Assembly (NCBI GenBank): GCA_977017575.1
Contig: CDRNVI010000145.1
Span: forward strand, 26,797 to 90,796
Direction: 5' to 3'
DNA length: 64,000 nt
DNA from: Paramoeba atlantica
Taxonomy: Eukaryota; Protista; Discosea
Shown in pieces: positions 43,630 to 46,479 of this stretch (positions within the stretch are counted from its first letter, which is position 1; every line of letters starts with the position of its first letter). Position numbers and translations under genes: made by a program. A model generated the notes under the pieces. The model ran no database searches and had not been told where the DNA came from. It was given only the letters and a program-made list of their open reading frames with translations.

Positions 43630-43788
43630 TTCTTTCTCCTCTCTCTTTTCAACTGAACGGAAACGGAAAAAAGAAATAAAAAGGAAAACGGCAAGTCGAC
43701 CTGAACTTTTTAGAAAACTAAAATAAGCTATCGTTTTTAAGGGAGCTAAATTTTTCTTTTTTTTTGTTTGTTTTTTCTTGCTCTGTAC

Positions 43789-43900
43789 TTTGAGTTCAAG
43801 CCTTGAGTTCAAAACCACGACGTGATTTAAAGGGGACTTTTTGTCCAATCAATAACAGTTTTATTCGAATAAATTCAAAAATGGGTTGGGGAGAAACGGT
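43789..43900 (+). repeat. Left terminal inverted repeat (112 bp; 113 bp if the TSD is TA)
   Basis: Begins TTTGAGTTCAAGCCTTGAGTTCAAAACC (TTGAGTTCAA occurs twice). Contains the perfect palindrome TTTATTCGAATAAA at 43860-43873. Confidence 0.97.
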
Positions 43901-44117
43901 TCTCTCGATTGTTTCTTTTGTTGGTTTTTGTTGTTTCGAAGAAGTGGGAGTGGAAATAAATGGACCTTAAGTTTTCAAACAATTCTTTGATTGTCTGACG
44001 TCAATAAATTACCTTTTTATGGTCAAAGATGACATGGCAGCAGCTCAGTGGACAAAACAAAATCCTCAAAGTTGACTCATCACCTGTGAATTGAAAAACA
44101 CTTTCAAAAATCTCACA

Positions 44118-45769
44118 ATGGATCAGATTCCTCGAAGGTCAAGTCTCCCCCTTGCTGAAGGGACGAAACAAGTGGCAAAAAAACAAACTGGACGAAAAGG
44201 GGGAACACTCGCCACAGTTCGCACAAAACAAGGACAAGTGAAGACCGAAAAAGCGGCTCAATCTGCAAAGTGGGACGAAGAGGAATGGATGCTTGTTCCC
44301 CTACAGGATTATCGATTAGTTCCAATATTTGAGGAAAAACAATCGAGAATCAACTTACCCCGTTCAGCTTCGCGATTGTTTTGTTTTTCCTCTCTCTGGA
44401 CAGAGGATGTGGTGTTGGCAATTCTTGATCGAAGCAAAGTCTCCCTTCAACATTATTGGATGCATCTTGCGATTCGGATCCATATTCATGGAGGATCAGG
44501 AGGGAAAAAATCTTGTTCTCGGGACCATTGGCCACTCCCTGTGGAAATCTTCAAAGGGTGGACAATGTGTTATCCAAATTTTGTTCGAATCTTCTGTGCT
44601 TGTCCTGTGGATATCCATGCATGGGAAATTCTGTCGAAAAATGCATCACGCCTTCTGACAGTTGGTGATCGCCAAGCCGCTGATGAAAAACAACAAAAGT
44701 GTCGAGCGGAAGTAAATCCGGTAGTCTCTCTTGTGACGTCCAAAAAGAACGCTCCCGTTGGGAATTGGTTTTTTCAAGTTTGTTGTCGGACTCCAAATGG
44801 TGTTCCTTACATGCTCAAATGCCGCCTTGCAAAGGTTTATAAGGGCGACAAGAAGCTTTCCCATTGGTCAAAATGGGTCAAGGCTGAAGGAAATAATCCT
44901 GTGACTTTCTCAGATTCTCTCTATGTTGCAGACGAGACGGTCAGAACGTTCAACAACGAAAAGAAATGTCTGAACCACCTGTTGAGGAAGTCGAAAAGAT
45001 TGGTTTCTTTTTTTCTTATTTTATTTTCCTTTCAATTATTTTTCTCATTTTCTTTGTAGACCTTCCAAAAGGGTGGTACCAAATTTGCCTTCCCAATTCT
45101 CCTTCGATTTATTTTCGAACTCGAGGCCAACTTGTCAGCCATGAGCCCCCAAGTCTGAAAAAGAAGTCAGGTTCATCGAAAAAAAAGATCAAAGAAAAGA
45201 ATGGGAAGAAGAAGGAGGAGGTTGGAGAGGAAGAGGTTGGAGAAGAAGAGACAGATGAAGAGACAGATGATGAAGATGATAAGGGAGAGAAAGGAGGTCA
45301 AGAAAATGGTGGAAAAGAAGGCAAAGAAGGTGAAAATGACGAAGATCAGGCTCTTATCAAATGTCGTGCTTGTCGAAAGGAAAATCGGTCTGATTTCAAT
45401 TTTTGTGGGAAGTGTGGAACTGGTTTGAAGGGAGGAAAAAAGAAGGGTGGTTGTTTTTCTGGTTTTGGGGTTGGGTCTGATCCAATCATGTACACTGATT
45501 ATGGGATTGGATTTGATGATTGTGACCATTTTAATATGGACTTCTCGAGGCACCAATGGCCCTATCGGAGATCGGGAACCAGATCGATGACAAAAGGGAA
45601 ATCATTCTCAGGGTATGAATTGAAAATCGATGATTTTTATTTCACAGGAATGCTTCTCAATTCTTACGCTCTTTTCCAAAGCCAGAATAATCACCATGAT
45701 TCCTCTTTCTCTTGTTTTTGTGATCACTTGGCCTCTGAAATTGTGTGTTGGTTGAAAACAATCAAGTAA
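44118..45769 (+). CDS. piggyBac-family (DDE_Tnp_1_7-like) transposase, split over two frames around a T-rich putative intron (~45003-45059)
   Basis: TVGDRQAADEKQQKCR..SKKNAPVGNWFFQVCC..PYML resembles piggyBac TPGAHLTIDEQLLGFR..NKPSKYGIKILMMCD..KYMI (Asp at 44682). VTFSDSLY..LLRKSKR resembles ITCDNWF..GTVRSNKR (Asp at 44913). PIMYTDYGIGFDDCDHFN resembles PQMVMYYNQTKGGVDTLD (Asp at 45524). MLLNSYALF..FCDHLASEI matches the C-terminal helices. Alignment was from memory; no HMM was run. Confidence 0.8.
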
Positions 45770-45773
45770 CTTG

Positions 45774-45885
45774 ACCGTTTCTCCCCAACCCATTTTTGAA
45801 TTTATTCGAATAAAACTGTTATTGATTGGACAAAAAGTCCCCTTTAAATCACGTCGTGGTTTTGAACTCAAGGCTTGAACTCAAA
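45774..45885 (-). repeat. Right terminal inverted repeat
   Basis: Base-for-base reverse complement of the left TIR. It starts 5 bp after the transposase stop codon. Confidence 0.97.
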
Positions 45886-46479
45886 GTACTGTGTTTCGTG
45901 ATGAATTTCTCATTGAGAAAATTCTCCTTTTCAAAGGTATTTCAAAATATGAAGAAGAAACAAACAACAGAAGTTTTCTGTTTCACATTTTGAAACCACC
46001 ATGTTTTCTTCAGAAAACATGACTTCAGAAAAAAAAAAAGGGGAATCATTCGAGTCCCACTTTCTGAAATCTCTTTTGGTTTTTTTGGCGATCAAAAGCA
46101 AATTCAAGTTTTAAACCACAAAAAGAGCAAACTTTTTTGAAAAAATCACTTCCTGACCAAAAACAATCAAACTTTATCGATTTGTCAATTTGGCCAAGGA
46201 TTTCGATGACGTCGTTGCGGATTGCTATATTAGGTTTTCTAAGGAGGATGAGTCATCATCATTCGCCGAAAATAGTTTTGTACTTTTCGGAAATCGCACG
46301 TCTGTCTCGAGACCGGAATGTTCAAGACGACCAGAAATCCGGAATCCTTGCCGATTCCGATGGAGAATCCTATCAGATTCAAAAAATTCAAATCAAATCC
46401 GATGAAATTTCATTGAGTGACGTCATCATTGGTGTCACTCCTTGGGTGTTTCGTATTTGGGGCGGTTTGTAGACAACTC

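Follow-up and report, generated by a model that had tools for sequence, protein, structure and literature searches.

The element and its surroundings

The window, by which we mean the whole 64-kb stretch of DNA analyzed here, comes from an AT-rich eukaryotic host with short introns. It harbors a perfect inverted repeat, whose arms extend over 116 bp when counted from the G of a GTAC tetranucleotide (43785-43900 and 45774-45889), and this GTAC forms the outer edge of the repeat on both sides. The arms enclose two reading frames, which overlap, and a stretch that resembles a GT-AG intron (Table 1). The element is located about 155 bp upstream of a start codon (43629, minus strand) belonging to the outermost gene copy of a tandem ankyrin array. 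This array (10600-43730) consists of ankyrin-repeat genes with many introns, all on the minus strand and repeated about nine times, with a unit length of 3.5-4 kb and 80-88% identity. No second copy of the inverted-repeat element was found elsewhere in the 64-kb window.

A first-pass annotation, made from the window sequence, had described the locus as a young, piggyBac-like transposon with identical terminal inverted repeats (TIRs). The perfect repeat bears out the identity of the TIRs, and comparison with further copies allowed us to delimit the ends of the element.

Table 1. Features of the element in the window, delimited according to the preferred reading of its ends
Feature	Position	Strand	Basis or remark
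Target site duplication CTG (CWG), left copy	43783..43785	+	Copy comparison, empty site
TIR, left, 115 bp, starting with TAC	43786..43900	+	Inverted-repeat and copy comparison
TTGAGTTCAA, two copies (TTGA-NN-TCAA palindrome), spaced by 13 bp, tip of the TIR	43790..43812	+	Candidate transposase binding sites
Palindrome, 12 bp, within the TIR	43861..43872	.	Mirror at 45802-45813
Exon 1 of the transposase	44118..45002	+	885 nt in the window copy, 1207 nt in full-length copies
First Asp (ADEK); second Asp (SDSLY)	44682-44684; 44913-44915	+	In exon 1
Junction of the 322-nt out-of-frame deletion	44960..44964	+	AAAGA microhomology; residues ~284-390 lost
GT-AG intron, putative	45003..45059	+	57 nt in the window copy; 56 nt and phase 1 in full-length copies
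Exon 2 of the transposase	45060..45769	+	235 aa, open, without C-terminal cysteine-rich domain
Small three-stranded module	45062..45149	+	WW-like pattern (LPxGW..YF)
Low-complexity linker, lysine-rich, then acidic	45150..45349	+	Disorder predicted in a homolog
Zinc ribbon CxxC-x10-CxxC, in the insert	45362..45415	+	Zn_Ribbon_1 E 2.5e-4, under the curated cut-off; present in P0013 and P0027
Third Asp (DCDHFN); Asn at the D450 position	45524-45526; 45533-45535	+	In exon 2
TIR, right, 115 bp, ending with GTA	45774..45888	-	
Target site duplication CTG (CWG), right copy	45889..45891	+	Copy comparison

Copies of the element and their target

Copies were obtained in a homolog search with exon 1, which returned near-identical proteins from the ENA assembly ERZ24900291. 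We compared 11 loci of this assembly, one of which (L007) is the window's own locus and is 100% identical to it, flanks included. All 19 ends recovered from these 11 insertions read C-(A/T)-G-TAC-TTTGAG. In seven of the eight copies with two ends, the triplets on both sides match in direct orientation (five CTG, two CAG), and in the remaining one, the older copy L002, they are mismatched (CAG/CTG). A C-W dinucleotide outside GTAC is expected by chance at ~0.11 per end and at 11 of 11 loci at ~4e-11; the matching of W on the two sides, taken alone, has a P of 0.035. CWG, rather than TTAA, is present at all 11 loci. In the window, CWG is ~3.6 times commoner than TTAA.

One independent empty site is available for comparison. 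The L012 copy is inserted in another repeat, element-free paralogs of which are present in L008 and L001, and both paralogs have a single CTG at this position, with neither GTAC nor TA. Because of this, TAC...GTA must belong to the element, and the duplication must include the variable W. Since the empty site has one CTG, and since the A/T varies between insertions but matches within seven of eight copies, the duplication has an odd length, either 3 bp or 1 bp. The host repeat (L012:2278-2628, L008:8196-8570, L001:9088-9263) is poly(A)-tailed and probably a retroelement, and the L012 copy lies near its 3' end. For the insertion site in the window, an empty counterpart was not found among the ankyrin-array copies; similarity ends ~55 bp short of it.

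Full-length and deleted copies

Full-length copies measure 2424-2425 bp. Three of them (L001, L003 and L004, the last with many substitutions) have an open exon 1, a phase-1 intron of 56 nt and an open exon 2 of 235 codons, adding up to ~638 residues with retained catalytic motifs. The window copy instead shares with L005 and L006 a 322-nt out-of-frame deletion at AAAGA microhomology, which shifts the frame inside the catalytic core and is absent from the first-pass annotation. Because of this deletion, the enzyme cannot be made from the window copy. These three deleted copies are 0.05-0.1% apart and occupy three different sites, each with a separate CWG pair, and the window copy differs from its nearest copies by 0.05-0.14%, in agreement with the young age ascribed to it before. 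The window copy is therefore a non-autonomous derivative, which was most likely moved in trans very recently.

The intron of the window family is a prediction from homologs: in P0013, one intronless frame of 683 residues spans both exons, and in L011 (47-49% identity) the gene is interrupted by an intron in much the same position. Two other gene models were considered and rejected. An alternative donor at 44967 would join both window frames into an intact gene, but the full-length copies reveal the 322-nt deletion instead, and a 36-nt intron candidate at ~45614-45649 encodes a peptide that is conserved in the intronless P0013.

Across eight copies (window:43786-45888, L001-L006 and L012), 72 of the 94 variable sites are C>T or G>A changes at CpG, which makes up 6% of the positions. 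Such a bias suggests that transposon copies are CpG-methylated and then deaminated in the host. Furthermore, some copies carry insertions of their own: L002 has a nested insertion of ~230 bp within exon 1 (L002:3714-3941), and L008, which lacks the left end, has an insertion of ~400 bp in exon 2 (L008:5206-5611) that begins with a T run, as in a reversed poly(A)-tailed element, and apparently has a long target duplication.

A diverged piggyBac-type transposase

The window exons were searched one by one and entered as separate rows in alignments A4 and A6. Pfam and PDB searches with the single window proteins yielded no transposase match, and PF13843 (DDE_Tnp_1_7) in particular was matched neither by the window exons nor by P0001, P0003, P0013 and P0014. 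A four-sequence profile, searched against 1.84 billion representatives, detected 151 relatives with the common motifs DEK, DSxY and YxxxFxxCDxFN; none were found in viral contigs, prokaryotic genomes or a first metagenome scan, and the deep alignment varied too much to serve for scanning loci. Many of these proteins (P0023-P0159), known only from metagenome and Logan contigs, form a large clade of compact, piggyBac-like transposases of 430-480 residues with DEK, DSxY and CDxFN motifs, most of them without a cysteine-rich tail.

In an alignment of 72 relatives, 29 match PF13843 weakly (E<0.05) and four match DDE_Tnp_1 (PF01609) weakly, and these are the only transposase families matched. The 72-row profile hits Trichoplusia ni piggyBac (6x67) over residues 121-515 with an E of 1e-6 and aligns its motifs to D268, D346 and D447, and an Asn to D450. 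The three Asp are kept in 70/70, 71/71 and 64/65 rows, and the Asn in 62/65. Likewise, an AlphaFold model of P0013 (mean pLDDT 76.6) superimposes on piggyBac with a Z of 29.2 and an rmsd of 3.3 A over 351 residues (Foldseek E 4.5e-11). The match includes the helical DNA-binding domain, and atlas structure searches agree. The model also matches piggyBat (Z 26.3) and Tn5 (Z 18), which uses hairpin chemistry, and Mos1 with a Z of only 5.8. The proteins stop ~80 residues past the third Asp, where the DNA-binding domain has its last helices, and have no C-terminal cysteine-rich domain.

On these profile and model comparisons, we classify the transposase as a deeply diverged DDD enzyme of the piggyBac superfamily. 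The first-pass annotation had recognized piggyBac-type motifs, and the profile and the fold confirm them; it had also proposed a DDE_Tnp_1_7 search, in which a failure to match would speak against piggyBac. The window protein does fail to match, and it is the profile and fold evidence that restores the assignment.

A subgroup with an insert before the third Asp

The loop preceding the equivalent of piggyBac Y439 has 19-29 residues in 59 compact relatives, 156-296 in P0015, P0019, P0013 and P0027, and ~200 in the window family. The insert contains a three-stranded WW-like module (LPxGW..YF), which has no Pfam match and reaches a Z of ~2 in structure comparison, followed by a linker, lysine-rich at first and then acidic, and by a zinc ribbon. 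In the sister group of P0015, P0016, P0017 and P0019, which lack the zinc ribbon further on, a CPxCxC(G) motif is found in the first loop of the WW-like module; a relocation of the metal site within the insert is thus conceivable. In piggyBac, TTAA is held by V414, L416, Y439 and N440 (PMC7351741). The insert adjoins the equivalent positions, which is suggestive but nothing firmer.

Nine rows of this long-insert subgroup fall on one side of a branch with an SH-aLRT of 99, in an unrooted tree built by a quick method, with the insert columns removed, canonical piggyBac and the window exon-2 row left out, and P0027 forming a long branch. P0027 is 25-31% identical to other subgroup members and occurs on two JGI contigs, L013 and L014. 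L013 carries a 2889-bp TIR element that reads CTG-TAGG...CCTA-CCG, and the L014 contig starts exactly with TAGG. The triplets of L013 differ at their middle base, perhaps from mutation or a collapsed assembly, and the sequence lends loose support to TA termini and to C-N-G as the target throughout the subgroup. The N-terminal half of the L013 gene is interrupted by two or more additional introns (L013:612-684 and near L013:1015), at positions that differ from that of the window family's intron.

Target and superfamily: weighing the alternatives

The most likely parse of the ends is CWG-TAC...GTA-CWG, with 115-bp TIRs and a 3-bp duplication. The same family and enzyme can also be read as a GTAC...GTAC element that duplicates only the central A/T of C-W-G, implying a 1-bp duplication and a 1-nt stagger. 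This alternative predicts identical filled and empty sites, and the sequences alone fit both duplication lengths equally. It would moreover suit the G next to TA, which is invariant at 19 of 19 ends and at both L013 ends, and 1-bp duplications have been reported within the PHIS group (PMC10045372). Yet it requires a larger change, as the offset in the piggyBac dimer is 4 bp (PMC7351741), and the L014 contig begins at TAGG, without the G, a weak point that could also reflect assembler trimming. We regard the 1-bp duplication as rather unlikely and clearly favor the 3-bp duplication with TAC ends. The proposal of the first-pass annotation, a duplication of 4 bp (GTAC) or 2 bp (TA) with TTTG..CAAA or CTTTG..CAAAG termini, is extremely improbable. 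GTAC is indeed present at both ends of every copy; however, TAC belongs to the element at all 19 ends of the 11 insertions, so that GTAC is not host flank, and the empty site, where a single GTAC had been expected, contains one CTG and neither GTAC nor TA. Nor would this proposal explain the matched, variable A/T outside GTAC. What stands of the earlier view is a divergent, young lineage with a non-TTAA target and of interest as a tool; the target, however, is not GTAC. An odd-length duplication is in fact a larger departure from piggyBac than a 4-bp GTAC would have been.

A CWG duplication is also the defining trait of NuwaI, a PHIS-type element (PMC4482050), which raises the question of whether the family belongs there, or to another superfamily outside piggyBac, with piggyBac-like motifs arising by chance. 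The failure of the family proteins to match PF13843 and the weak DDE_Tnp_1 matches of four of the 72 relatives would fit such an origin. However, the third catalytic residue is an Asp within the piggyBac Y..D..(D/N) pattern rather than a Glu, the element has one ORF, without a Myb/SANT gene or GGG termini, 29 of the 72 relatives do match PF13843, and piggyBac and piggyBat come out on top in the profile and fold comparisons, the helical DNA-binding domain included. We consider a PHIS or other non-piggyBac origin highly improbable and largely refuted, by the sequence features more than by the fold, as no solved PHIS transposase is among the matches listed. Tc1/mariner elements combine a TA duplication with a DD34E/D enzyme; membership in this superfamily was rejected, given the lack of TA at the empty site and the low Mos1 score.

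Proposed mechanism and implications

Taken together, it is quite probable that the window element is a non-autonomous, internally deleted copy from a recently active cut-and-paste family, which encodes a diverged piggyBac DDD transposase, has TAC...GTA ends, inserts at CWG and duplicates three bases. If T. ni piggyBac is taken as a guide (PMC7351741), a transposase dimer would nick the 3' ends, form hairpins that are opened 3 nt into the flank, compared to 4 in piggyBac, and carry out strand transfer into CWG, the stagger of 3 nt being equal to the length of the duplication. The overhangs left on the donor, CAG and CTG, would be complementary, and the same analogy predicts footprint-free rejoining with one CWG left behind. 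Full-length copies would have moved the deleted ones in trans. The paired TTGAGTTCAA motifs at the TIR tip are candidate binding sites for the transposase; conceivably, the C-terminal domain is replaced in end recognition by the internal zinc ribbon together with these twin sites and the palindrome, which the long, symmetric TIRs contain.

On a broader level, we lean towards the view that the family represents a branch of the piggyBac superfamily that is still active and has not been described, known to date only from environmental and protist assemblies, in which the offset changed from 4 to 3 (or 1) nucleotides and TTAA gave way to CWG/CNG as the target, without a cysteine-rich domain and with footprint-free excision. 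If true, this branch would be invisible to Pfam and to pipelines based on TTAA and the cysteine-rich domain, and it may deserve a group name of its own. A natural, recently active piggyBac homolog with an odd-length CWG duplication makes it possible to test what determines the stagger and the target, and if excision stays seamless when the duplication changes. CWG is not an AT-only target and could suit gene delivery if the enzyme works outside its host.

Comparison with known systems

By its enzyme, the element is a member of the piggyBac superfamily. It shares with piggyBac (T. ni, 6x67; piggyBat, 9c0f) the helical dimerization and DNA-binding domain and the RNase H core with an insertion domain, the DDD triad (D268/D346/D447) and the Tyr at Y439, as well as the overall plan of ~2.4 kb with one transposase gene, TIRs and a fixed, short target. 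At the same time, the window family is only ~14% identical to piggyBac, has one intron, and departs from canonical PBLEs in target, terminus, D450 and cysteine-rich domain. The 4-bp TTAA duplication of piggyBac and PBLEs is replaced by CWG, of odd length, and the CC..GG termini of piggyBac by TA..TA (TAC..GTA); the TIRs have 115 bp and are fully symmetric, as opposed to ~14 bp. D450 is an Asn, the C-terminal cysteine-rich domain is absent, and the loop before Y439, of 22 residues in piggyBac, has ~150-300 in the subgroup and includes a zinc ribbon.

Repbase and Dfam list divergent piggyBac subgroups such as piggyBac-A and piggyBac-X; a literature search for these names found nothing. In the open literature, with subscription journals, Repbase and Dfam outside its scope, our search brought up no piggyBac whose duplication is 3 bp long or CWG. 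In PBLE surveys, the target is given as TTAA, the TIRs begin with C and have ~14 bp, a cysteine-rich domain is present, and other flanks are treated as mutations (PMC5381638, PMC12732532). From 273,643 piggyBac frames mined in 2025, in the largest such effort, only those with a cysteine-rich domain and a TTAACC-like end were kept, filters that would have removed the CWG lineage; a limitation pointed out in the same study is the preference for TTAA (PMC13461360).

Among other systems, NuwaI (PHIS) shares the CWG duplication, in its case confirmed by empty sites, but differs in its Harbinger/IS5-kind DDE enzyme, second Myb/SANT ORF, GGG termini, length of ~4.5 kb and restriction to animals (PMC4482050); the common target is most likely convergent. 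IS1380/IS4-type elements are related in fold, as seen in the Tn5 match, and IS1380 has 4-bp duplications and CC..GG ends in common with piggyBac (PMC10045372), neither of which is found in the window family. Finally, PGBD5, as read from a published table (PMC5381638), resembles the window family in having introns, no cysteine-rich domain and an Asn at the D450 position. However, PGBD5 is a single-copy host gene with a degenerate triad and without TIRs, whereas the window family is mobile and has kept its three Asp.
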